A stretch of 64,000 nucleotides of DNA. Source: Phallusia mammillata. Lineage: Eukaryota. The position numbers and the translations under genes are program-made. The stretch spans positions 2,170,001 to 2,234,000 of the forward strand of contig OZ281498.1 in the NCBI GenBank assembly GCA_965637545.1, given 5' to 3'. Below, piece after piece: positions 12,940-61,100 of this stretch. The notes below the pieces were generated by a model. That model ran no database searches and had not been told where the DNA came from. It was given only the letters and a program-made list of their open reading frames with translations. Each line of letters starts with the position of its first letter. Position 1 is the first letter of the stretch.

Positions 12940-13156
12940 ATGCGCAAGACGCGGACACAGAGCATTGCGTCTGCCGCCCAATCGGCTCTTGTATTCGGAT
13001 TATTATGTTTATGTCAACATACAGTAACATTGCGCGCCACAAACGTAAAGGAAATCAGTCGGACGACGTCGAAGTTGGAAACCGAGGACCGCGTGGCGCC
13101 AAAACTGGACGCCCTGAAGTTTCAGGCGCCGAATGGAGGACAGTCCGTGTTAAAAG
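12940..13156 (+). CDS. ADAMTS9: Coding exon 1: signal peptide and start of prodomain ([27 protein letters not shown]...QSVLK)
   Basis: ATG at 12940, hydrophobic core [10 protein letters not shown], donor AAAG/GTAGGA in phase 1 matching exon 2. Confidence 0.75.
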
Positions 13157-22100: not shown

Positions 22101-25100
22101 ATATTTGACCTTGACCTATTTAAGCAGGTTTTCCAACGAGGTTCGTTTTGTCGATCGTGTGTATTCTTTTATAGTTGTTATACCGAGATGAAGATAGACT
22201 TATACAACAGAACTGTTTTTCACAATATTTTAAATTGCATATTCAGTGTATTTTGCAACTTATTTTTGCAGTTAACTTTAACGAAACTCGCTGGGTAATC
22301 TGCTTTGAAGGTACTTTGGCGATTGTTTGAAAATTTGTCAAAAAAGTGAACTTGTAAAAGTATCAGTAAATTACAAGTGGGTTTCGTGAAAGTTTCTATC
22401 CTTCAAATGCATTTAGACTTTCTCAAATAGATATAATAATTTGTTTATCAAACTGATCGCTCGACGCATCCATCATTATTTGGTCACAATTAAACTTATT
22501 GTTCCAACATCATAGTTGACTTCGTTTATTTATCCCCTTCTTTCTCATCAATCAAAAACTATGTTTCCGGAACATTCACTAAAATCGAATAAATGATTGT
22601 TCTCTCATTATTACGCCGCCCACTGAGCAGTGTTAGCAAACAATCGTCGTTTGTCGTACACAAAGGAATTGTGGAATGTTTCTTCTGTTCTGTGTTGGGT
22701 CGCCACTTACCACCACTTGTTCGGTTTCAACCGACAAGACAGATCAGTTGACCGGTTACCATACACTCTCCAGCCCTGACGACCACCCATGAACATTGTT
22801 CGTCAGTTTGTGGTTCTTTGTGGCAGTTTGTGGTTAAAATGTCAGCTTCGAAGGTCGATTGATCCATAATCACGCATTTCAGGGTTTGGTTGTAGACTTT
22901 CTTTGGCTCTTTCCTGCCCAAATCCACATTCAAGCGTTCAATTTACCTAAAAGATCATTTACTTCTTTCCTAACATTCCATATACCGTAAATTTTGAAAG
23001 AAACTAATTAAAATGATAAAGGTAAAGCGTTCCTAAAATACAACTGCATAAATTTATCCTGAAAAGGGCCAAAAACGTTCAGTTTGTGAAGTTGATTAAA
23101 CACTGCATGGAAACAAATTATATTTACAAAGTTTGGCACATAGGACTTCAAATGTGCTGCAGATCCAAAAACTGTTAATCTAAGTGTAAAATATAAAGTT
23201 TGGATTTCTGAAATGTGCAGTGGATTTACAAATCTTGAAGGTTTCAAACTTGTACAAAGTTGTTCGCCAAGTCAGAAACACAAGCGTACAAAGTGTCCTT
23301 AGCGTCAGAAGAAGCAAACAAACAAAGTGGTCGACTTTCTCTTCAAGTAGTTCCACTCAAGTAGCATGGAAGAAATCTCAACCTGTTGCTTCCAGCTATC
23401 AGGCTTGGTTAACTTGCCATTTGTTTACATTGCAGTTGCAAGCGGTCTTTCATCTTTCAGGCTTAACATAATTCACCCCTTTGAAGTTCCCCGTCTGACT
23501 GGGGCCGCTCTACGGGTAAAAAACGCGGCCTTAAGTGGGTAAATGGGGCCATGGGGCGAATACAATGCGGTAATGGGGGTAACTGATGGCCCAGTTGGGT
23601 GAATGTCCTCAAGTCGTTCAAGTTGATGTACAGTTGTAAAATTTTATTTTTATGTATTTTTTCGGTATATAGGGTTGAACCTTTTAATAATCACTTACTT
23701 CAAACATTTTTTAAACCTCATTACTAAATCATGTTGCGCAAAACGTTGTTAAATACCAAGTTTTACGACTTTAACACTTTCACAGTTGGAGTTTGAACTC
23801 TTGTCGTTAAATCAGTTCCCATGAAATTACATCAGTGCTAAAGTTAATCATGCGTGCTCAAATACGCGCCAAACTAATCTATTTGAACTATTGGCACGCA
23901 ATAAAGTCCATTGTTTGTCTTTTCCGGTTACAATTGCCTTCTTTATTGCGTCATAAAACTTTGTATTGTCGAATCAAGTTGTTTGTTGAAGTTAAATATT
24001 TCGTTCAGATGTTAACGTCACACCACAGATTGTTACGTCACATATATTATTTCACTGCGTTCTAAACCTACAAACATTGGTTTGTTAAGTCATAATTTCG
24101 CATTGCTACGTCATAAACATAATTCTTTGAACGGAGTTTTGCAAGGAGAAAAGCTTTTTAACAACTTTTTTAGCAAACGTTTTACTTAAATAACTGAAAT
24201 AAAGTTTTTTTACGACTATTTTTAATATTGTGTCCAAAAAAGCTCATCTCATAAACGCAGAAAGTTTTCCCACAATTCCTGTCGCGCCGAGTCACGCCTC
24301 CCTGCTTTTACAAGTGGTCGTGGTCGTGCGCAGTGAGGCATGAAAGAACCTCCTCATTCTATTTCATTTCGTGGGTTCTTGTTCCCGCAAAAAATGAAAC
24401 CAAACCACATCGGTCACAATGCATCTAAAAGTTGTTGTGAGGTTAAGAAACAACAAGTTATTACGCAACAATGGCTATTATTCCCGAATAAAACACTTTA
24501 CACTCGCCGACTATAGCTTAAAATCACAAGACTTAACTTAAAGCATTCAACTTAATTTTTTTGTTTCTTAGATCCCGCACCCGAAGAGTTCGGGGAATCC
24601 CCACCGTCTAGTAACTTTGACGACGAAATCATTCACAAAATGCGGAGAAAATCCGAATCGGCGCGAAAACTGTCGTATCCGTGGCAACAAGCTCGGCTCC
24701 TTGCCAACGAGCGACGCTCACGTGACCGGATGACGTCACGGACGCGCGACAGGCTCGTTTCTATGGCAACCGGATCTAGAGAGCGCCCTCTGCTGCTCAG
24801 GAGACTCGCTAACCTCAAAATTCCGCGGGTCCGGCGTTCGATTGTGACGTCACAAGGTCATGGTGACGTAACAAGCGATGACGTGGAGAGATCGCGACGG
24901 AAGAGATACTTGTCTTATCCTCGCAATGTTGAAGTGATGGTGACTGCGGATAATATGATGGTTCATTCACATGATGATGTCGAACACTACGTTCTCACTC
25001 TTATGGCGATCGTAAGTTTGTTTTTCGTTTACTTTGTAATCCTATCTATCAAAGATAAATTCTTACAAGGTTTTGCTGCTTAACCATTATACTGATGACA

Positions 25101-37100: not shown

Positions 37101-40100
37101 GTTACAACCGGTTTGTTTCTGTAAAACCTCGATTTGGGGTACAACACCGTCAATACTTCAAGTTGTTACATATTTTGCAGACGACTAAGTCCTATATTCG
37201 ACAGGTTTTGGAAAATATTGTATGACAATATATACATAGTGTTCCAAGATATTTAAGTGTATGTCTTAAAAACGAGTTTTTTTCTTGATTTCTTCCTTAT
37301 TTCCGAACTACACCACTAAAACGAAGCACAATGCTTCGAAATAACGCGATGTAAAAGCAATCAGCATTTCAAAAATGTAGTTTAATACAACGACCACGTT
37401 GAGCCAACCCAGCAAACTAAGACTGTTAAGTCAAAAATAATTTTCCGAATATGAAGAGCCTTCGACAATTTAAACCCTTCACCACAATTTCACTGCAAAC
37501 ATTCTTGAAATAAGCAACTTGCTTCTGTTTATTGTGAGCAAACAATCCACTCTATCTGTGACGGAACACGTTCGAATAATTGTGACGTCGCAAAGCAATG
37601 TTTGTGATGTCACGCCCATGTCCAGCCCCTCGCTGTTTCGTTACTATGGCAACCTTTATTGTGGAATCCGACGTCACGATTTACAATGTTGACGCAAAAA
37701 TTACAGCCGAGGTCAAAAGTCTCTTTGGCGCATCCAGTGGCGTAAATATAAATATTTCGGTGACATTTATGATTAGATGCAACAAAGAATTAATTAAGAT
37801 GTTGATTAAATTTAGCGTGTTTTGGTAAAATTATAAGCTTCCTTGTAAATCTAGCGAACCTTGAAATTAGATTTATAAACAATAATCAAGGTCCATAGAA
37901 ATCATATTTACATATATCCGTTTTCAGTCTCCAGAATTTCATCCGACAGAAAACTTTGCAATTAGATTTCCCCATTTCTACAACTCACATATTGACATTG
38001 ATTTTTGTATTTTCAGACAAGACATTTGTCGGTCAAGCACAGCATGCGACACTTTAGGTAAGTTTGTTCAAATTTCGATCAAAATATTTCTGACAAGTGC
38101 TTTCAAAGCAAAACCGGCGCTTAAGAATTTTGAAGCACTTCTTGTTTTTGCAAATTCTATTTTTTAATTCTAGTTCGTTTCAAACCGTGTGAGAATAAGA
38201 GATGTGTCCGTCCGAATTGGCGGGTTTCGTTCACCTTCAAAGGTGTGCAAGGTCAAATCGCGACAGGACGCCCGGTGTTGTCGGTTTCTAATTATCACAC
38301 AACAATGGTTGGTTGTGACGTCACATACAGGAAATTGTGCGTTGTCTGAACTCAATTGTGACGTTTTGGCGAAGCGGCGATGCCTGTATTAGTGGAAAGC
38401 GAGCGCCGCTAAGTTTATGTTTGCTTCTCGAATTGTTTTCCTGTCTCGTGTTTACTGGGAAACGCTAATTTGGCTGTCTTCAAAGTCGTTGTGAGCTAAC
38501 AATGGCACTATAATCACTTCGTTCGATAATTTGACGTAACAATCAACATTCATTTACAATCCGAATAAGGTTAAACGTCTTCTAAATTACCACGAAATTA
38601 CGAAATACTTACTTTAGTTGGTTAAAAGTACAAAAAGTCCGGTAACTAGTATTTGCTAAAAATATTACATCACTGACTTCATCACAGGTAATTGCTAATA
38701 GACTGTTATGATACAATTTGACCTTCAGCATTTTACAAGGTCACTGATGACGGGTAATAGCCTCTGTGCAGCCTTTTATCTTTTTTTTTTTCGCTTCAAT
38801 GTTTCGGGATGTTCAACAAACCAATTTGTCTGGAACTAAGTTTTGAGCTTCATCATTTTTTTGTTAAAACTCTTTCACTTCACTGCATAGCCTATTATTA
38901 TACGTCTTGACTTCGAATGGAAAGCATACAATTCTGACTTTAAAAACTGTTAATACTGACCTCAAAACGGCTTCCGTTATTTAACATTAGGTTTTTGCAC
39001 TGAAGCGGTTATGCAGCTGCAAATTTGATTTGCCTGTTATTGCTGTCAACTCCAGCAGACTAAACTGGGTGATAAATTAGATTTGCGCGCCCCAGTTTCA
39101 GTCGACCAAACATCGCTTGGGGGTGATTTGGGGGTCAGCTTTCAACCCCAGCTTTAACCTAATCCTTTGTCAACATGATCTGTCGCTTTATGATGTCACG
39201 ATGCCAGTTAGCGACTCGTGAATACTGGATAAAATGATCGAGTTTTCGCTTTTGTCCTAACGTCACGAATTTTATTTTTACAAGTTTGAAATAAAACTTT
39301 TTATGATTTTTGTGCATCATGATATTTGGTTAACGTTGTTAAAAACTTTTGAAATGAAACCATACATTGTGCACCTGTGAAGCTTATATGTGTTTCGTGG
39401 CTTCCTTGCCGAAAGACAACTAGTTGCTTGCGGTTTTTAGACTTAATGTGAAAATCTATTTCCGTCTTTGCTTGTCCACTTCACGGTTTACAGTTGAAAT
39501 TTTCTCCGTCTAACCCGTTTAATACTTCCTTACCACAGCGGGACAATGTCATTGTTCGAATCCTTCCACCAGCGAACAAAGAAAATTCCATTATATTGTT
39601 GGTTTGCATTGTTATTTGACACGTGACGAGACGCGTCAAGTTTCTTCTTTCTTTTGTTCTCGATTGCAAAAGGCCAAAGGTCAAATTTCTGTCTCATTTT
39701 TTGTCTGATTTTTCTTCTGGTTTGCTAGAAGTTGGCCACTAAACCCTCCATATCGTTTTGAACAACGTTAAACTTGTCTTTGAAGCCGAGTACATGACTA
39801 TGATAGCCTAGCATCTGCTCGAATTGTTTTTCCAAATAAACTAAAAGATATTTAGCCTCAAAACAGACACTTGACCTTATTTCAAGATTTTCGCGCCTTC
39901 TTGCAGTTGACCTTCAGTAACCTTTGCTCATTGTCTTGACACAATGTACACCAAAGCCTATATTTAGAACATCTTGAGATAATTGGATTAAAAAACGTCT
40001 CAATGTAAGCCTTTAGCGGAAAAAAACCTGAAAGGTTTCTTTCTCGGTTTGTTTCTTTTGGTCAGTTTCATGAATAGACAACCACATTTTTTTCAGGTCA

Positions 40101-43100
40101 TAAAAAGTTTGTCGTATAAAGAGCTAATTGGTCACGTACCTAATAGATAATAGAACAAAGTCAAACCTAACCTGATATTTTTGCATCACAGGTTTGGCAG
40201 AGTTGGGGACGATGTGCGACCTCAAGAGGAGCTGTTCCATCAACGAGGACAACGGACTGAGCACAGCTTTCACAATCGCTCACGAAATCGGACACGAGTA
40301 AGTCGTTGTGTCGTCATAATGCATGACTATGACGTCACGGTGCAGCATAACATCTAAAGTTTGGGTTTCTAAACTAACTTTCCTCCAATAAGGTTATCAG
40401 TTTTGCTTTATCCAATATTTACTAGCAAGGCTTCGACATACCCAATAATCTAAACGTGCATCAGTAACAAATGCCGGCGATTTACAACAAGACGCTCGTT
40501 GGTAAATCCGCTTTTAGTACAGACAATAACATACATAGCATATTCGTCACATAAACTAACCTTCATATAACAACTACAACATGTAAGTGTTGCGCATGAC
40601 TTGTTTTCCACTGTCACGTGCATGATTTCTAACCGCATGATCGACTTCAGGTTCGGCATGGTGCATGATGGTGACGTCAAGTGCAATGTGACGTCACAGA
40701 GGTGAGACAATGTGATGTATTATGAGATCATACTTAAAATGTGAAATGTGGTCATTGAGTGTGTAAGCTGGTTTTCGTTTACTCCGATACCGTGTTAACT
40801 ATTTTATTGCAAACTAAGCATTTGTTTGTATTTCCCTTTCTTATTAAACTCAAAAACACATTGGATAGAAACATTTTTAAATACTTTACTTCACTAAAAA
40901 CTTTTCTTTAAATGGACATCTTAAGACAGTGTTACTCAACCTGGGGGTCGCCAAGCACTTTTGAGGGGGTCGCGAAAACGCAACCCAACTCGGAATGATT
41001 TTATCCGTATCAAAGAAACTTTCCCTGTGACTTCTGTTTAGCATAGTAACTCACACAACCGTTTGATTTAGAACGAGCGCAACAATATTTGCGATGGTAT
41101 ACTTGTATAATTGCGGTTTTTGGCTTTTCTTAACATAAAAAAAACATGAAATAGAGAAATGGTTAGTGAAAATGAGCCACAAACACCATTTAAGGGTTTT
41201 CTGGAGCACAGCAAAACGCCGAACTATTGCAGCCACGTTAGATTGCAAATGTGTGATGAACACAATCAACACACTCTGGTAGTTAAACTTCTTGTGTGCG
41301 TATGCAAAGAGGTCGCGTGGTGTTAGAAAACCTCTAAAGGAGGTCGCAGAGTAAATAAGGTTGAGAACCGCTGTCTTAGGAGGTTTTTCAAGCGATTTTC
41401 AATGACTTTAAACGAAAATTATGTAGACCCGAATTTTGATGCAAATTACTTATTTAGGTTCAACGCTCCACATGACAACAATGAAAAGTGTTTGGACGCT
41501 AGAGGGCGTGCAGTGGAGCTTAACGTGATGTCACCAACATTGGATCATAACGCTCATCCTTGGTCGTGGTCGAAATGCAGCGCTAAATATATCACAAGCT
41601 TCTTGGAGTAAGTTTGCAACTTCTGTATTCTCACTTAACCGTTCATTTGGTTTTGACTGCTTTCATAAAACTCCTTCCACATTATTTTGAGGATTGTTTT
41701 GGGTTAAACTCTATTTTGGCAGTAAATAAAGTTTATTCATGACAACAACTTTTGATGAATTCACCCAATAAGTTCAATTCGATTGTTATGTTATGTGACA
41801 ACTGAATATTTTCGAGTCTGCCTCACTAAGGGCGCGGTCCACAAATGTCTTAAGGTTACGTCATTGTCATAATAATTACGTCATCTGTACAGTGGTTTTC
41901 GCGAAGCTAACGTAGCGCGCGATAAGAGGTTACGCCATTCTCATAATAATGACGTCATCGGTTCTTCACGTCACTTTAACAAAACAACGTATTGTTTAAC
42001 TACAGTAAAAAAACGTTAAATTTTTGTTTCAAATTGAATGCAATTGTAGCATAGTTGATGCAGCAGTTCGGCAACACTGCAAGCTGTGCTTCAAACGCAT
42101 GCAAAAGGGGGTGCAAAAGAGGGGTGCAGACCCCCGGGATTAACATTCCTTCCTTTGATCAGTCCATGAGCTTTCATTCATCTCCTTTTGCTTCTGCTGA
42201 TTATTTAACCGTTTCCGCATGACCGCTTAGCCGGAATGCGTTGCCTGGCAACTAGGGATTATCACCAGAGCACGTGCTTTCGATGCCGGGAAGGAACTTT
42301 TCTGCAGCGAGAACAAATCCTTTAATCCTAAGCAAATTTTAGGGTCAAGACAATTTGTGTATATTTTGGGTTTTATTTCAACACGATTGTTGTTGAATAT
42401 TTGACCGGATTTATGTACTTGACCTTCTTTGCTGAGTAATGTTCATCTTCTGCAAAATGCAAGAAAATAGTGTAAAAGTTTCATGTTTACCTGCCACATT
42501 CCATTGCAAAGCTTTAAATCACTTAAAATGGCCGTTTAAACTGTGACTGATTTCTCCGGCTTTCACCACGTGCTAAAAAGGTCACATCAAAGTCACAGGC
42601 ATCAGCCAATGTCGATCAATCTCAACCCTTTTGATCCGGGCATCGAAAATTGAGCAAAACCCAAACGAGGCGATGATTTAAGTTTTATTTTCGTTGGTGG
42701 CAGGTAGTTGCCAGTGGCAGGGGTCACGGCGGCTGACAGCCAGGCATGCGTGACATGTTTTTCTTTGCATGCCACATTCCTCACACTGCAAGTGGTGCCG
42801 AATGGCCGGAGTAAAGTAAATAAACAGCCTCAGTGAGTTGCAACTTAAGTATAAGCGAGCGCCGCCAACAACTTGACTGATTGACTTGCTGACGCCATCC
42901 AAGATCTGTTGTTCATTCTAAGTCCACAGGCTTAGCACTTTTGCCAAGTAAAAAAGATTTTTTAAACCTGTTCTATTTCATGCTACAAAATTTACCGATT
43001 AGAAAACAAGAAACAGACAAGACATTATATTTGTAAAAAGCATTGTGTATCGAAAACCCATTTGTCATTTTCACACGAAATTTTTTATTTTAATCCATGT

Positions 43101-46100
43101 ATTTTACAGATAATGACAATATTTATCGAAATATTCGAATTGCAAGATACCTATATGTTCTACGCGACTTTAAAGGCAGTTTTTGTTCATTGTCCTCTAT
43201 TATATCCTGAAATATTTCATATTACATTTTAAAATCATTTTAGTTATGATTTTAAACAGGTTTTTCACAGACATCGTCTTTACGGCGGCAACTGAATATT
43301 GCTTACATAGTTACATTTTACAACTATTTGACTTATCTTTACTTAACTGATATAAATCTGTCACTTTCAGCAACGGCAACGGGCAATGTTTGTTGGATGA
43401 ACCACCACAACGAGTTCTGCATCTTCCCAGTGAAGAACCAGGCGAAGTTTTCAACGCAAACGACCAATGTAGCTTCGTGTACGGGAAAGGAGTGACCTAT
43501 TGTAACTTCATGGTGAGAAAAAAAGAATATCGTTGAAAATTCAATTGTGTATGGGCTATAGTGGATATAATATATTGCACACATTTCAACAATTGCTATT
43601 GTAGTCTTGAACTTTGTCGTTTTTGTGTTTGATCAAGCTGTTTTGTTTCTATGTTTTGACTAAACGTTTCTTGTTCTTTAGTTCTTTCAGTTACAAGGAC
43701 TGTTTTTGAGTAAAATAGACGCCTTTACATGTGCAATGCGTACTGTACAAACTTGACGCCTAGGAGTTAAAATTTAAGGAGAAACGATTCCGATAACCCA
43801 GTGTTAAAATATGGCAATTTTTCACCATTACAACAAGCTGTAATTTTACCGCAAACAACAGCTGGACAAACACAACTTAAAGTCACATCCAATTTTGGTG
43901 TGTTTACGATCCAGGCGAATCGCAAGTGTTCACAATATAAATTGCAGGTTTCCCAAATTGCAGAATCTTGACCTTAGATTCGAATCTTCGTCTGCTGATT
44001 TCGCTGATAACATTGTACTGCGCGGTCTGCGGAAAAAAGTTTATTGTTTTTTCGCGACGACTCGGTGACTGACTTCGGAACGCGAGCTATTATATTGTGA
44101 CGCAACAAAGAAAACTCGACATAGAAGTTTTTTGCAATAACATTTAGAAAAATTGTGTTATCAATCTTTTCCTTTTTACACTCACCACCTGCAAAAATAT
44201 AATAATGACGTAATCGCGATGTTCGATTATGACATAGCATTATGTCGTCACAACAACAAAACGAAAATCTATCATCGGTGTTTCCATTAGCGTGCGGATT
44301 CATAACGTTCGGCGCGAAACCTCTGATGTTTCGCATCGGTGCGTGTGAATTATATCATGCCAATAAGACAGGAAACAAATCGAAGTTTTTGGAAGTCGCG
44401 CGTTTTCCTAAGGTTTCGAACGCGCGTCTCGCTCTGTTTCGCTTGTAATGGAATATTGAGCGTCTTGTTGTGATCACAAAGTTGGAAGGTAATAACTTAC
44501 CAGGGAGGGGGTGTTCTGACAATACTGTACAACTCAATTTGTGTTGCGCCAACCCAAATCACCGACTGTTGTTTCTACCGCAGATTGGTTACTTACACCA
44601 AAATTTACGAGCAAAGCGGGTTTGCGAATAACTTTTTAACCTAGAGTGAATTTGGAAACAAGATTTTAGATTCAACAACCAAAATTAACCATAATGTTTA
44701 TTGACTGCACGAAACTTCTCAGGAAATCCTCTTTGAGCTTACAAAGTCATGTATCTAACAAGAGCCATAGTTGACTGCACGAAGCTCGTTAGAAACCCCG
44801 TTTTACGCTTGCAAAGTCGTATGTGTAACAAGTGTTATGGATGATTATTAAATGTAACGGCGCTTTGCAAGCTTCACCAAACGAACTACTCCGCTTGTTA
44901 TCTTTGACAGACATTTTGTGGATTAAAGTATTCGGTTACTTGGCTCTGATTAGCAGAATCGGATTCGGTTCCTTTAGACCGGGTTGTGAAACCGGAACCG
45001 GTTGCTAATCCGATAATTTTGTTGACGTCTCGTCTCTCTAAAAATCTGAACCGGGACGAAACATATTTTTTACTTACTGCTTGTCAGGATTTGTCTGGAT
45101 AATCGGGCTGCTTCGAGTCTAATAATCTCCACCAACCGTCTGGTCCTGGGAACTTGTAATGCAGTTTTAGGAAAGGGTTCAGATTTCACAGTAAATTAGT
45201 TATGGTTTTTTCATGTGTTAGTCTAACACAGTTGTCGTCAACTTTTTTTGCACTGCGGACCGGTTTGAAACTAAAATTTTATCACGTTTTATGCGACCCG
45301 GTAAAAAACCCTCACAAAACCGGCACCGGGCCGCGGAGCGGTGGTTGCCGACCACTGGTCTAACACACTTACTTTGCATGTGTAAGTTTCAGGATTTGAA
45401 TCCACAAATTTTTATCAAAATTTTCGCCAACTCTTTCAAACTTTCAGTTTCAGAACTCTTGCGCCCGCTTGTGGTGTGTGAGTCAGAACATCAGCCATGG
45501 ATGCAGGACTCCTCATGTTCCATGGGCTGATGGGACGAGATGCGGAGACAGGAGCAAAAGGATGGTGAGATTAAAAAAACGCTTTTCTATTCGAATAAGA
45601 AAAATGATTTGAAAACTTCGCAATAAGATTGCCTGTTTTAGTAAATGTTTGTTATGTGCATTACACTAATCAGGACATCTTTATCAAGGTAAAGCACGTT
45701 ATGAAAGTTACTGGGTATACAGAACAACAATATTCTGGGTAATCACTTGATAATTGTCCTGTTTAACAGTCTTATGCTTCAGGTTTAATCAAAGTTGCTT
45801 TTGTGTTATCACCATGCGTGATGCTATAGGAACGATTGTGTTGGTTAGTATGTCATGGCCCTAATAAGGACGCCTCGAAAAGGACGTTTAAACTTCAGAT
45901 AACTAAAATACAATAGTGTAGGTTTTGTTTCTGTCAATATCATGTTTTTGCAACTTGACACTTTGTATATTTCAACAGTGGTGTCAACAAGGTCATTGCG
46001 TTCCCGAAAACCGTCAACGAGTTCCGGTGGACGGAAGTTGGGGAGAGTGGAGCCGGTTCGGAGATTGTTCTAGAACCTGCGGAGGTGGAATAAAGAGCGC

Positions 46101-52100: not shown

Positions 52101-55100
52101 GAGGAGGTATTTCTCGAAGCTTCGATGATGACGGCAGCCCACTGGTGGTGATGCGAGGGCTTGGAGAGGAAAGAGATCTTTACACGTCAACCACTAGTGG
52201 TGAGTAGTGAAGCGAGTTTATTTGTTGAAACTGGGGACATTTAAAAATTGTGGTTAGAACCATCGGAACGTTGTAAATATTCCCACCTTGACGAAAAAAA
52301 CACGAATGTTTGGGAAATAAACAAACACAATCTGTTTTTAATTCTTCGATCTTTTCTTTTGAGCTGCCTCCCTCAATTTTACTAGCCATATTTGCGTGCA
52401 GAACCCACAACAACAACCACCATAGCAACCACCACTACCATGGCAACCACAACAACGCCCGTTCCCACGACAACCAGCACCACAACCACTACTACCATGG
52501 CAACCACCACTTCGCGTCGCCTCCGAACCGATTACCGTGGCAACCGATACGACAATGGAGTGATGGTGGTGAACAGACACCGCATGAGGGCGGCATGGAG
52601 GACTGGATCGTGGACACAGGTTGGTAACTTTGCGTTGCGGGTTCGAATCACAACAAACTAAATTTCCATCGTTGAAGATGAAACAGACTTTTTTCTGTAT
52701 AACTTCTGAAACAGTTACAGAGCAGCCAAAAAGTTCGATTTTTGAGGCTTTTTAAGATGATGTTATACTTTTGTTACACCAAGTCAAAATCGAAACCCAT
52801 TTAAAGTGTCTGAAACTGAGACAAGAATAAGACCTGCTGTCAATTTTTTAGTTTGATTATTGAGGTTTTCGAAAACTATGTTATACTTTAATTATACACT
52901 AAGTTATAATTAAAACCATTTGAAAGTCGATCAATGAATGTGAAATTTGTGAATGTTAACTAGAAAGCCTCCTTGCATGCTAGGTGATGGTTGTCTCAAA
53001 AGTCACAATTCCCATTTTCAAACTCCCTCTTTTTCTCAGTGCTCGGCATCCTGTGGAGTCGGATACAGGGAGCGTTACGTCAGCTGCAGGTTTCTACGCG
53101 GATTCGGTGAAGCTGATCCGGATATTTGTGGACACAGAGACAGCAAACCCGCTTCAAGGGAAACTTGTGAAACTAGATCCTGTTTCGGAATCTGGAGAAC
53201 CGGATCCTGGACTAAAGTGAGTGATGTGTTGGATTTTCGGTTTTCGCTGGAATATTGCTAGCTTTAAACGACTTTAACCAGTTTTTTCTGCTCATGATCT
53301 GCCACATACCGATTTAAAATGAATTTCAAAGCAAATAATTTAGGTTTTTACTCCAAACAAGCATTCGAAAGCTTACCACCCTTGTATACAGTGCACACTG
53401 TTTTGATCTATAAGTCTCATCAGTGCAGCTGGTGACGAGAAATGGCTTAATGCTTTTACATTGTTATCACCACTATTTCTTTCAAACTCTATTTTCTTCT
53501 TTCAGTGTTCCGAAACTTGTGGGGAGGGGACCCGTACACGTCACGTGAGATGTGCTTACGAAGGTCGTTACTATGACCACGCAGATTATTGTCCGAACGA
53601 ACCGCGTCCACTGAAATGGGAAGTTTGTCGAATCCGACCATGTCCTACAACAACAACAACAGCAACTACTACAACAGAAGAACCTACTACAACCAGTACT
53701 GCTACCACCACAACTAGAATCACTACCACAGCTCCGACAACTACAACTACTGCTACAACCACCACTCCGGCGCCTACCACAACATCTACAGCCACAACAA
53801 CTACAGTTTCAACTACAACTTTAGCTTCGACAACTACCACAGCTGCCACAACAGAATCTACAGTTCCAACTACGCCAGCAACGGTAAAAACAACATTGTG
53901 GCATAAAATTTATGCTTTAACCAGCAACAAAGCTTAAACATAGTTTCCCACGTGCTTGCGTTTAATTCTTTTTTCTTTGTTTATCGTGCACTGTACTAGT
54001 CGCATTCAGTGTTATTTACTCTGGTAAAGGCGACTTGTATAGGACGCCGAAACGTCAGAATAAAATACTTTTGCCAGAAGACCTCTAATTTGGTTGTGGC
54101 ATCTAAGCTCTCCGTAACTGTTAATTGTCCAGGGTAAACTGCTTGGAAAAATTCATAACTTCCATAATTTATTTTCTCGTAGACCAAAGCTCCAGTTCAT
54201 GTTGACGTCATCCATCCGCGTCAGTCCAATGACGTCAGTAATGACGTGAGTAGGGCAAGATACAATGGCAGGTGGAGAATGGGTACATGGTCACATGTAA
54301 GTTGAAGTTATTATTTGATGGAACTTATAAAAAGTGTTTTTAAATATTGACAATATTTAACTAGTTTTCGGGACAAAATGGGATTTTTGTAATTGTGTTT
54401 GACTGCTTCGCTTTTAAAAACGGACACACCTGAGTATTAAGTTAGTGTTTGTTGTAAGATGTTGCCATTTACAAGTCTGATACATGGAGATTTTCGTTAG
54501 TAACAAACCTATTTCTTTGCCACTGATTTAATTTGTTCATTTCTGTCCTTCTCACACGTACCCATGTTTGCAGTGTTCGTCAACATGTGGCGGAGGTACA
54601 AGGAAGCGGGTGGTCGTGTGTCGATCGTTGTCAACTCGAAACGCAAGTTGCGACGAAGGGGAAAAACCAGTGAGCATCGAACCGTGCGAATCCGGAACTT
54701 GCCCGAGATGGAAAGTCACCAATTGGTCGGAGGTACGTCACCACTGATGATGTCATCACTTATTACTTTATGCCATGCTTTTTTATTCAAGTACCTCTTA
54801 CTATGATTAAATTTGATTCTGATAACAAATATACGTAAACAGCTCTAATGTGGTTCACCATACTAAAGCTGACGTCATAATTACAGTGTTCGAAATCCTG
54901 TTCCGATGGAGTGAGAAGGAGATACGTTTATTGCGTCATGTCCGACAACAGAAGAACCTACAATCACCGTTGTGACGTCATAATGAAACCTGTTGACGTG
55001 GAAGTTTGCAACAAAAGGCCGTGCGCAGATCAACACCGGTGGCGCAAGGGAGCATGGGGATCGGTACGAGCTTTGCGCTGATCGTGAATCAGCAAATTTG

Positions 55101-58100: not shown

Positions 58101-61100
58101 AGCAGAGCATAGACAAGGATGGGGAATATTACTTGAAGATTGGAGACGAGATGAAAAAGGTTGAAATTACATTTTATTCTATTTCTTTTGTATTTGTTAG
58201 CTTCTTGCTGTTACAGCTTCTTGTAGTGTAAAGCCACACAAAAACAACCAATTTTATTTTTTCTTCCCCTCATTTTATATACATTTCTCCGCAGATTTAC
58301 TGCAAAAATATGCGAACCTCTCATCCGACCGAGTACCTTACACTTGCCGCAGGAGCGCTAGAAAACTTCTCTGAAATTTATGGATACAGGTAACGCTATT
58401 TACGACTAAAATAGTCTTTGCATCTGAAATTTCCACGCTCCGTCGCTCAATTTCCACGCCAGTTTTTAATTAAAATGCCAACTTTTCCAACAACTATTAC
58501 CTGATGTATTTTATGACTTACCGTCCATTTAACTTCCGATGTGGGCGCTTTCACTCAGTTCTTGGAACAATAGTCAACAACATTTATCAATACCAGTAAA
58601 TAATGTAAGCTGTACCACTTTAACATCCTGAACAAACGTTTCGTCCCCCAGGTTACATGTTTAGGTAAGTTTTTGTCCGTCAGGTGTAAAGTTCGACGAA
58701 ATAAGTAAAGAACTTATGATTATAGAACTTGTAATTTTGCTAACATTTTGCCAACCAGCACGATGTGCATCATCATAGCTTTATTGTATAACTCTAATCA
58801 GTTGAACGAAAAACTTTGTCAAACCACTTTCAGATACAACATTTATCAACATTTACCTTTTCAAACGTGATCCTACAAACATTGCCCAACCTCATCACTT
58901 TCGTTGCAGACTCATCAACGCCGACACTTGCCCCAACAACGGGTCACGTGACGATACGTGCGCATGTCATCATGACAGACCGGACGCTGGTAAAACGGAA
59001 TTCAGCAAAGTGCGGTTTGACGTCGACACAATGAGAATTATTGGTGAGTTGTGAAATGAAATGTCAAACGAAAGTGGGTTAACAAACAAGTTTTGTGCAA
59101 CTAACCGAATTTATTACAAAGGTACATGCAGCTTACAGTTCAACTCCGTAATGTTTTGCTTTGACAGTTTCCCTCATAACATATTTTTTTACCTTACTTA
59201 GACTTCTGGTTGAAAACTTGCTTTGTATTTCAATAAACATTTCTGCTGCAAAACAACGGCTTTTTCTGGCGGTAGCATTACATAGGAATGTCTAAGAACT
59301 CACAAAATCACGATGTATTCAATACTAAATATAACTTAAACTTCATTTAGTATCAAGAAACGATTTCGTTGTTCTGTTATCAGACTCTAAACTTTGTACA
59401 GTCAATATCAAATCAAAATCTCAACTTTTTACAATCAAACTCTAAAACCTTAAACTCAAATTTTAAAAGTTGATGTTGATCAATTGTTTCAGTTTCATAG
59501 CTCTCACACAAGAAATACCCGAACTTTCCTTACTCACTAAGTTCTATCCTGTCAAATTGTCCCGACGCCTAAACTACATCCAGCAGTTAGTACCGCATTA
59601 CAAGGGTGTTACTTCTAACGACCTAAATCCGAACTGAATTAAGTTGTCATGACCCGGATTAAACAGCCCTGTTGACCTGGATTATGTGATTAACATCGTT
59701 GACAGCTTATAACTGTTTGTTGCTGTTTATCAAATCACTTAACTGGCGTCATTAGTTGGGTTTATACCGATCACTTTAACCAACGTAATAAATGTCCTAA
59801 AGTTATTAGTGTGAAGTATAAAAATTAATATAGACGTAAACAACATATGCTTTGTCCTGAAAAGTTTCGGTAAATGCCTATGTCATAATCAATAACCTAC
59901 TGTTATATTCCTGATCAGACTTATAAATGTAAGTATATGTATGTTGGTCCAAAGTTTGTAGGCAATTAATGAAGATTTCCAAGTGAATCTTATAGAACGA
60001 TTTTTTTAATTAAACTTGTCTTGTATTGTTGCATGCATATCGTGTTTGACAAAGGATGTTGTGATTAGCACGAAACAAATGTCACAACATAACAGTTAAG
60101 TACAATTGATGCATTATTGGCTGAATGGCGGCAACGCCCTGAAAGTGGGATATCCTAAAATTTCTGACTTTACTTCTTTGCGCTTCAATAGTTCCGCTAA
60201 TTTTAAAAATCTGTTTTGCAGCCAACGACTTTTCCTTTGCATCAACTGTTTACGGTCTTAACGTTGCTTACGGAGTTGCCGGGGATTGCTACAGCAGAGT
60301 GAATTGTCCGCAGGTAATGCAACACTTTGATCATGGTTGTTTTTTATTTTGCTTCACGTCAGTAGTTCTGAAAGCGCTCACTTATTAACGTTTGTTACTG
60401 GTTGCTGGCATTAAAAAATTTGTTGTCAGTTAGAGTAAATACAGGAACATGGGAAATTCGTTTTTTTTAACTTAAGCCTACACAGTCAGTTTGAAGTACT
60501 TTTGACATGAACATTAATACAGATAAACAAAGTTGGCTGTACAATTAGTTTGTTTGTAAAGCCCTGTTAACGGACTGTACTGAAAAAAAAACTTTATAAA
60601 AACTGTTTTCCACCGAGTGTTATTTAACACATATCTCACTTATTCATTTCCATGTCCGTATATTAACATTAAAATTATTTCAAAACTTTTTGCTGATGTT
60701 AAGTCAAAATAATTGTTTACAAAAGTCCGTTACCTTTCGTTTTTGTTTTAGGGCAAATTCCGGGTCAACTTGGAAGGAACTGGGTTCGTCGTCAGTCCGT
60801 ACACTACGTGGCGCTCTTACGGCCGTCAGTCTGTGAGGAGAACGCACAAAAGCCACGTGAGTGTTGCTGTAGGGATTTGAAAACCAATAGTTACCTTTTT
60901 GTTTGGCTGGTCTTCTGTTAAAATCGCAAGACTTGCGATATATTCCAAATGTTGCGTTTGTTATCCTAAAAATTCTTAGAGAACAGCAAACATTTACATG
61001 CGATCTGAACACAAACCGTATCTTTTTGCAATTTAAACACAAACACATAGACCCGAATGAAGATGTGATGTTTTTTCCAAACGTTTATTGAACGAAGTAT

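Follow-up and report, generated by a model that had tools for sequence, protein, structure and literature searches.

The stretch analysed here, a 64,000-nucleotide (nt) piece of the Phallusia mammillata genome (GCA_965637545.1, contig OZ281498.1, positions 2,170,001 to 2,234,000) that is without N runs and is referred to below as the window, holds a whole gene of the ADAMTS9 (GON-1) type. The intron after coding exon 8 of this gene interrupts the zinc-binding consensus of the protease, and within it lies a 51-nt segment which we regard, with little residual doubt, as a genuine and conserved alternative exon. What is found is an alternative cassette exon duplicating a metal-ligand module, cassette exons being in themselves already known. 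The features on which the argument draws, in window coordinates, are as follows:

12940–61310, forward strand: the whole ADAMTS9 (GON-1 type) gene of Phallusia mammillata, from start codon to stop, in about 39 coding exons located by tblastn with the deposited protein
40192–40297, forward strand: coding exon 8, ending in CAC GA, that is HEIGH plus GA (phase 2), followed by the donor GTAAGT
40298–40650, forward strand: intron 8a, 353 nt, removed upon inclusion of the cassette (junction 40297>40651, GT..AG, RNA run X1)
40594–40667, forward strand: a cluster of five GCATG copies, a motif of the Rbfox type ((U)GCAUG), which starts in the upstream intron and extends into the cassette
40629–40639, forward strand: the CTAACCGCATG block, a branch-point consensus plus GCAUG, identical in Ciona in the alignment
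40651–40701, forward strand: the 51-nt alternative cassette exon ("exon 8a"), with both junctions in contigs of run X1 and two TGACGTCA motifs
40702–41457, forward strand: intron 8b, 756 nt (junction 40701>41458 in run X1)
41458–41607, forward strand: coding exon 9, 150 nt, with the constitutive third-His loop, the Met-turn NVMSP and the WSKCS cysteine (junctions in four of four runs)

The identity of the gene rests on a protein of 2254 amino acids (aa) deposited as Phallusia mammillata ADAMTS9 (CAB3220003.1), which was reached through a search with exon 4 that returned Ciona savignyi ADAMTS9 and then a follow-up search, and which in tblastn is collinear with positions 12940–61310. The exon identities range from 85 to 100%, with about half of the blocks being at least 96% identical and the lowest values partly reflecting the overhang of matches into introns. 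Hence, the locus is Phallusia ADAMTS9, and the exon counted as the eighth by the earlier note, which had been made from the letters of this DNA, is coding exon 8 of the gene. Open reading frames of the exons on the forward strand match the Pfam propeptide, reprolysin, ADAMTS_CR_2, TSP1, spacer, TSP1_ADAMTS and GON domains. The domain order, i.e., propeptide, reprolysin catalytic, disintegrin-like, central TSP1, Cys-rich, spacer and many C-terminal TSP1 repeats, is that of the ADAMTS9/20/GON-1 subfamily, with the C-terminal GON domain itself at 58806–59051 (PF08685, E = 1.5e-13). The subfamily version of the zinc motif, HExxHxxNxxHD with Asn at the Gly position, is present in the constitutive form as HEIGHEFNAPHD, the vertebrate ADAMTS9/20 motif being HELGHVFNMPHDD. 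The Asn that had been given as typical of ADAMTS9/20 occurs in all the vertebrate ADAMTS9/20 matches, and also in the crystal chains of ADAMTS-1 and ADAMTS-4. This short form is the one carried by the deposited Phallusia protein, a record from which the cassette exon is missing. The crystal chains of ADAMTS-4 and ADAMTS-1 (2rjp, 3q2g) can be aligned with exon 9 along its full length, and this exon therefore contains the third His, the Asp, the Met-turn and both the conserved Cys and the cysteine of WSxCS.

Inspection of the segment at 40651–40701 bears out the description that had been given of it: it is 51 nt long, is in phase 2 at both ends, and is bounded by the acceptor ttcag|G and the donor AG|GTGAGA, with CTAAC at 40629–40633, about 20 nt upstream of the acceptor at 40650/40651. 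It has no stop codon and preserves the frame, which is open in both Phallusia and Ciona; left unspliced, the same frame stops immediately at the donor GTGAGA (AGG TGA). The F, H, D, K and C of the segment stand in register with those of exon 9, with a DNA identity of 17/34 in Phallusia. Among the 70,713 stop-free 11-mers of the six frames, the segment is the best ungapped match to the exon 9 11-mer, with a score of 30 as against 25 for the next. The exact score distribution gives 3e-6 per position for such a score, which corresponds to an expectation of about 0.0035 matches per intron, or about 2e-4 if the match has to follow an AG directly. Further, F...HD...KC as an exact pattern has only two occurrences in the 64 kb, namely the segment and exon 9. 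A BLAST of the window with exon 9 gives the segment an E of only 6.8. The local sequence is made up of recurring GCATGA and TGACGTCA motifs, which encode H-D, D-V and V-T-S. Beyond the first 11 residues of the cassette neither protein nor DNA alignment recovers exon 9-like similarity above shuffled controls, and hence only the first ~11 codons are recognisably duplicated.

Four runs bearing the Phallusia label (X1, X2, X3 and X5) were examined over 37900–43800 in the form of assembled contigs. The junctions 38055/7>40190/2, 40297>41458 and 41607>43371 are found in all four, which indicates that these runs, whose RNA status would otherwise be a guess, are transcriptomes. The junctions that had been proposed for checking, 40297>40651, 40701>41458 and 40297>41458, are all present in run X1, with skipping only in X2, X5 and X3. 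The 40297>40651 junction of run X1 lies in a contig of 79 nt (26 nt of exon 8, the 51 nt of the cassette and 2 nt more) at a depth of 3.9, and the 40701>41458 junction has a depth of 2.9; both are flanked by GT..AG and have zero mismatches. As the contig with the skipping junction in the same run has a depth of 5.8, the cassette is included there in, very roughly, a third of the transcripts. In run X2 the depth of the gene is 46 and only skipping is seen, contigs being prone to lose rare variants. The segment is thus a genuine exon, with both of its junctions in spliced RNA contigs.

The mode of splicing differs from the one that had been proposed. The earlier note had the segment exchanged for the zinc-binding loop of exon 9, but in the Phallusia RNA it is spliced onto exon 9 at the usual start of that exon, and an isoform of the Ciona orthologue (X1, see below) likewise holds the cassette followed by the full exon 9. 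Since 41458 is the only downstream junction seen for the segment, it is a cassette exon placed ahead of the whole of exon 9 and not a replacement for any part of it. The contigs of the four runs contain neither a junction from the cassette to an internal acceptor in exon 9 nor one from the cassette to exon 10. The long product thus carries both loops in tandem, with 17 aa added in frame. A further contig of run X1 (40674–40768, depth 3) extends from the cassette across its donor into intron 8b, with the upstream intron 8a being uncovered. It could represent a partly spliced intermediate or a transcript ending in ...NVTSQR-stop, with an ATTAAA present near 40843.

Comparative evidence comes from the Ciona intestinalis orthologue. 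Its RefSeq isoforms X1 (XP_078494152.1, 2245 aa) and X2 (XP_078494159.1, 2228 aa) differ solely by FSMLHDDDVICNVTCER, 17 residues inserted at the same codon. The genomic exon opens with cag|A TTC AGC ATG CTG CAT GAT and, after GAT GAC GTC ATA, closes with TGC AAT GTG ACG TGT GAA CG|gtgagg; it is flanked by introns of 295 nt (8a) and 58 nt (8b). The two cassettes are equal in length and phase, and 11 of the 17 residues are identical (F, M, H, D, D, V, C, N, V, T, R). At the DNA level a hand count over the whole exon gives 40/51 identical nt, and the computed values over the 16 whole codons are 39/48 nt and 10/16 aa. The Arg at the downstream junction is retained through different codons (AG|G in Phallusia and CG|A in Ciona). 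Upstream, CTAACCGCATG is identical and the GGTGAG donor is common to both species; the remaining intron sequence is unalignable. Hence, the orthologous intron, which the earlier note had singled out as the place to look, retains the frame, the length and the key residues, and the N-V-T sequon that had been pointed out is present in both cassettes. The canonical Gly that had been read in the segment is replaced by Ser in Ciona.

The split of Ciona and Phallusia is dated to 285 ± 37 million years (My) ago (PMC5899321). The exon, the branch-point block and the donor have been kept for about 285 My, with the synonymous sites frozen. At identical degenerate residues the same codon is used in nine of nine cases in the cassette as compared with 30 of 72 in exons 8 and 9 (Fisher p = 8e-4). 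The differences fall on codon positions 1:2:3 in the proportion 3:3:3 in the cassette and 6:4:46 in exons 8 and 9. Likewise, the proportion of synonymous differences (pS) is 0.28 in the cassette and 0.92, i.e., saturated, in exons 8 and 9, and that of nonsynonymous differences (pN) is 0.167 as against 0.048, or about 3.5 times that of the flanking exons. Constraint on all codon positions is the signature of a regulated alternative exon with an overlapping RNA code, and the pattern points to a constraint that is at least partly at the RNA level, with an amino-acid sequence freer than that of the neighbours. The earlier proposal of a partial exon duplication under protein-level selection is therefore upheld in its first half, given the likeness to exon 9 of 17/34 nt in Phallusia and 23/34 nt in Ciona; its second half is not cleanly borne out, given the absence of synonymous-only changes and the 3:3:3 spread.

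Outside these two species the cassette was not encountered. In Clavelina lepadiformis the intron at the same position is ~137 nt long and has no cassette, and in the ADAMTS9 gene of a teleost the intron, which shares position and phase and is 576 nt long, contains nothing cassette-like. The insertion is found in none of about 120 vertebrate ADAMTS9/20 proteins and in none of the Ciona savignyi protein models. A protein word search centred on the cassette returned no other protein bearing it, a search for further species with exon 9 only returned no match, and a degenerate DNA pattern of the cassette had zero matches in JGI metagenome contigs. The best ascidian fragment that was retrieved (P0001) lies on a 1.6-kb contig, far from the cassette site. 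Ciona perhaps branches nearer to the aplousobranchs than to Phallusia, albeit with weak support (PMC5899321), and on such a topology the absence of the cassette in Clavelina may be a loss.

As for its origin, the first 34 nt of the Ciona cassette share 23 with exon 9, both of these exons begin with ag|ATTCA, and counting from the acceptor brings F, H, D and C into register in Phallusia as well as in Ciona. The cassette most likely goes back to a partial tandem duplication in which the first ~35–50 nt of exon 9 were copied together with the acceptor context ag|RTTC. After the duplication, drift would have gone on at the synonymous sites of exon 9, with the cassette becoming frozen. Right after the exon 8 donor, 27 nt directly repeat the core of the cassette (40311–40344 versus 40653–40699, 78% identical; one frame reads VVIMHDYDV), and the same region has an 18-nt stretch complementary to the 3' end of the cassette (83%). 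Possibly, pairing between intron and exon could loop out intron 8a; such pairing is not obviously conserved in Ciona.

The sequence around the 3' splice site suggests how inclusion might be controlled. The five GCATG copies at 40594–40667 mark the sole place in the 64 kb with at least four copies per 80 nt, on a background of 0.9 per kb and a Poisson expectation for such a cluster of ~1e-5 per interval of this length. At the corresponding place Ciona has four GCATG in 54 nt, one of them within the conserved CTAACCGCATG block. In the targets of vertebrate Rbfox proteins, sites upstream of or inside an exon usually repress that exon, an arrangement that would suit inclusion in some samples only. 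(U)GCAUG is the Rbfox binding element (PMC12435732, PMC11874969). An Rbfox-type factor acting on the conserved cluster, which spans the 3' splice site, would thus control inclusion, as the motifs suggest, and the frozen synonymous sites would reflect an overlapping splicing code. Two of the GCAUG copies lie inside the exon and are read as (G/S)-M and (V/L)-H-D, so that the zinc-ligand-like HD is bound up with the putative splicing code.

TGACGTCA heads the over-represented 8-mers of the window, with 30 copies as against 0.8 expected, often in the form of WTTRTGACGTCAC; the sites include 14270, 19266, 24845, 40672, 40689, 54973 and 56423. Coding exons, 10.7% of the window, contain twelve of the 30 copies; another four are found no more than 40 nt from the end of an exon. 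The orthologous Ciona locus has four copies in 33 kb, one of which is in the cassette. An exon-definition signal or a cAMP response element (CRE) acting at the DNA level are possibilities for its role, and in the literature searched nothing relevant to a genome-wide excess of TGACGTCA was found. A 1.6-kb Logan contig from another ascidian (L003, from SRR25569784) carries an exon 4 orthologue that is 56% identical. It is rich in DVTS/HVTS peptides, and the TGACGTCA habit may therefore extend beyond Phallusia.

The position of the cassette allows a prediction of what its inclusion would do to the protein. With the exon boundary directly after HEIGHE, the cassette supplies F-(G/S)-M-x-H-D in the HExxHxxGxxHD register and a Cys at the conserved spacing; the cassette His is correctly placed for this register in the sequences of both species. 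The cassette would therefore be expected to provide the third zinc ligand, the Asp and the following Cys, and the original FNAPHD...C module would shift 17 residues downstream, into the surface loop before the Met-turn. The outcome would be a functional replacement of the zinc-ligand loop together with a pre-Met-turn loop that is 17 residues longer and bears the N-V-T sequon, a combination that would alter activity or specificity. Comparison of the crystal chains shows that the length of the pre-Met-turn segment differs between ADAMTS-1 and ADAMTS-4. Set against the metzincin zinc site (3q2g, 2rjp), the short isoform agrees throughout; like ADAMTS-1, -4 and -9, it has Asn where the consensus has Gly. 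The cassette also gives xx(G/S)xxHD in register and a Cys at the conserved spacing. Unlike these structures, the long isoform has two modules in tandem, and either choice of zinc His breaks one spacing rule of the family.

Taken as a whole, the account of an ancient, regulated, frame-preserving cassette exon born by duplication, loop replacement in the protein included, appears to us somewhat better than an even proposition. Its most far-reaching component, namely that a single ascidian ADAMTS9 gene gives rise to two active proteases that differ in the loop of the third zinc ligand, the old module being displaced into an enlarged glycosylated loop by the S1' region with a tissue-specific retuning of substrate or inhibitor specificity, is tentative and should be read as clearly short of an even chance. 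Several observations weigh against this account. In the metzincin/adamalysin family the Met-turn lies 12–24 residues downstream of the HExxHxxGxxHD consensus (PMC4885070); here the Met is 36 residues after the cassette His, outside that range, as compared with 19 after the exon 9 His of the short form. The Ciona cassette has Ser in place of Gly, and the cysteines added number one in Phallusia and two in Ciona. The Ciona catalytic domain was modelled in AlphaFold with the cassette and in its absence, from alignments of 48 sequences; the mean predicted local distance difference test (pLDDT) scores were 45 and 44, and both models are uninformative. The 3:3:3 spread and the elevated pN give no demonstration of selection on the protein in excess of that expected from RNA constraint. 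Inclusion in Phallusia is documented by short, low-depth contigs of one run, which clearly holds spliced transcripts but whose tissue and RNA status are off record, and control by Rbfox is deduced from motifs alone.

The main rival takes the cassette as a conserved off-switch, whose inclusion wrecks the catalytic site to yield a non-proteolytic or poorly secreted ADAMTS9, thereby tuning the active dose or giving a protease-dead scaffold. We consider it a serious possibility, though still an unlikely one. It would accommodate the fact that either third His violates a family norm, be it His spacing or the Met-turn distance of 36 rather than 12–24 (PMC4885070), as well as the odd cysteine and the difference between species in the count of added cysteines. 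It would also fit an amino-acid constraint weaker than that of the neighbouring exons beside a strong nucleotide constraint. Additionally, a frame-preserving exon does not make the transcript a target of nonsense-mediated decay, so a stable altered protein is plausible. However, an off-switch has no need of an F, H, D, C register held over 285 My, although frozen nucleotides could yield such a register as a by-product, and the retention of the junction Arg through different codons and the conservation of the N-V-T sequon likewise speak against it.

A second alternative, which we hold to be distinctly less probable, is that the conserved entity is an RNA or DNA regulatory element, made up of the GCAUG and CRE-like TGACGTCA cluster, which happens to have usable splice sites, with inclusion in mRNA being a tolerated by-product devoid of any protein role. 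The even spread over codon positions without synonymous-only changes, the density of motifs (five GCATG and two TGACGTCA, the latter the top over-represented 8-mer) and inclusion in one of four runs are all in keeping with this. Against it stand a length of exactly 51 nt and an open frame in both species, along with conserved acceptor, donor and branch point, and the in-register likeness to exon 9, again in both. Moreover, the inclusion depths of 2.9–3.9 in run X1, as against 5.8 for skipping, are above trace noise, and the Ciona annotation pipeline also modelled an isoform with the cassette.

A true mutually exclusive swap, in which the cassette takes the place either of the first part of exon 9, with an internal acceptor near 41502 being used, or of the entire exon, is very improbable, and this reading was rejected upon consideration of the junction data and Ciona isoform X1. 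What can be said in its favour is that an in-phase AG exists at 41501–41502 within an AGA codon for Arg that Ciona shares, and that use of this AG would give a 16-for-14 residue exchange. Yet the sole downstream junction of the cassette is to the normal start of exon 9, and Ciona isoform X1 retains that exon in full. Further, as the Met-turn is encoded in exon 9, a 51-for-150-nt swap would delete it, with skipping of exon 9 also costing the paired Cys. Mutually exclusive pairs place one exon in each mRNA and comprise exons of similar length and full homology; here both exons occur together in the Phallusia RNA and in Ciona isoform X1, their lengths are 51 and 150 nt, and the likeness is confined to the first 11 residues. 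Lastly, it is scarcely credible that the segment is a pseudo-exon or a product of noisy splicing that resembles the zinc loop by chance, and this reading was rejected, for despite the BLAST E of 6.8 within the window and the fact that its HD codons are GCATGA motifs and its D-V and V-T-S codons the locally abundant TGACGTCA, the expectation of ~2e-4 such matches after an AG and above all the orthologous Ciona exon, 40/51 nt identical amid otherwise unalignable introns, effectively rule this out.

A few observations concern parts of the gene away from the cassette. Intron 8b contains the following element:

40916–41384, strand not assigned: an insertion resembling a miniature inverted-repeat transposable element (MITE), with 27-nt terminal inverted repeats, found by inverted-repeat detection

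The terminal inverted repeats are 81% complementary, and the element lies outside the cassette exon. It accounts for the length of intron 8b in comparison with the 58 nt of Ciona, and the high-depth RNA contigs with many mismatches that map to it imply that copies are transcribed elsewhere in the genome. Between the C-terminal TSP1 repeats are Thr/Pro-rich mucin-like stretches (52386–52560 and 53640–53900), which are also seen in the Ciona and Clavelina orthologues and not in the vertebrate ADAMTS9 proteins that were fetched. Several residues differ between the window and the deposited Phallusia protein, with the tblastn match of exon 4 (24572–25011), which overhangs the exon ends, being ~90% identical; these differences are consistent with high allelic polymorphism.

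The closest parallel to the cassette is its Ciona counterpart, which shares the codon of insertion (after HEIGHE), the 51 nt/17 aa, the phase, the cassette mode followed by the whole exon 9, and the GCAUG cluster. It differs in Ser for Gly, in a second Cys (NVTCE versus NVTSQ), in an intron 8b of 58 rather than 756 nt and in one rather than two TGACGTCA; the Ciona exon is an automatic RefSeq model, i.e., a machine annotation. Exons 5a/5b of the sodium-channel SCN-alpha genes arose by a tandem exon duplication that led to mutually exclusive exons with TGCATG elements, and the same study also reports a partial exon duplication in Ciona (bioRxiv 10.1101/2025.08.16.670673). The cassette resembles the SCN-alpha pair in its local duplication, its long-term conservation and the nearby (U)GCAUG. 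However, here only the first third of the exon was copied (51 versus 150 nt), and both copies enter the mRNA, giving a tandem protein motif without an either/or choice. Splice variants have been described for ADAMTS2, 4, 6, 7, 9, 13 and 17, with the events detailed for ADAMTS4 and ADAMTS17 affecting the spacer or the C-terminus (PMC8275829). Like those, the cassette generates isoforms of potentially different activity by alternative splicing, but in contrast to the ADAMTS4 and ADAMTS17 events it sits inside the zinc-binding consensus of the catalytic domain. The literature searched yielded no account of Ciona isoform X1, nor of a cassette at the active site of any ADAMTS.

ADAMTS9/GON-1 is an essential and highly conserved matrix protease, whose splice variants described so far alter ancillary domains and leave the catalytic centre as it is. 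Embryos of Ciona and Phallusia are routinely manipulated with morpholinos, CRISPR and electroporated minigenes. The cassette has been kept since before the split of Ciona and Phallusia, and within HExxHxxxxxHD it duplicates the third zinc ligand, the Asp characteristic of the family and the disulfide Cys. It offers a clear example of exon birth by partial duplication, accompanied by a conserved cluster of Rbfox-like motifs. Should the long form prove active, it would represent a natural, splicing-controlled remodelling of a metal site; should it prove inactive, the cassette would constitute a conserved route to a protease-dead ADAMTS9, which would be relevant to the debated non-catalytic roles of the protein.

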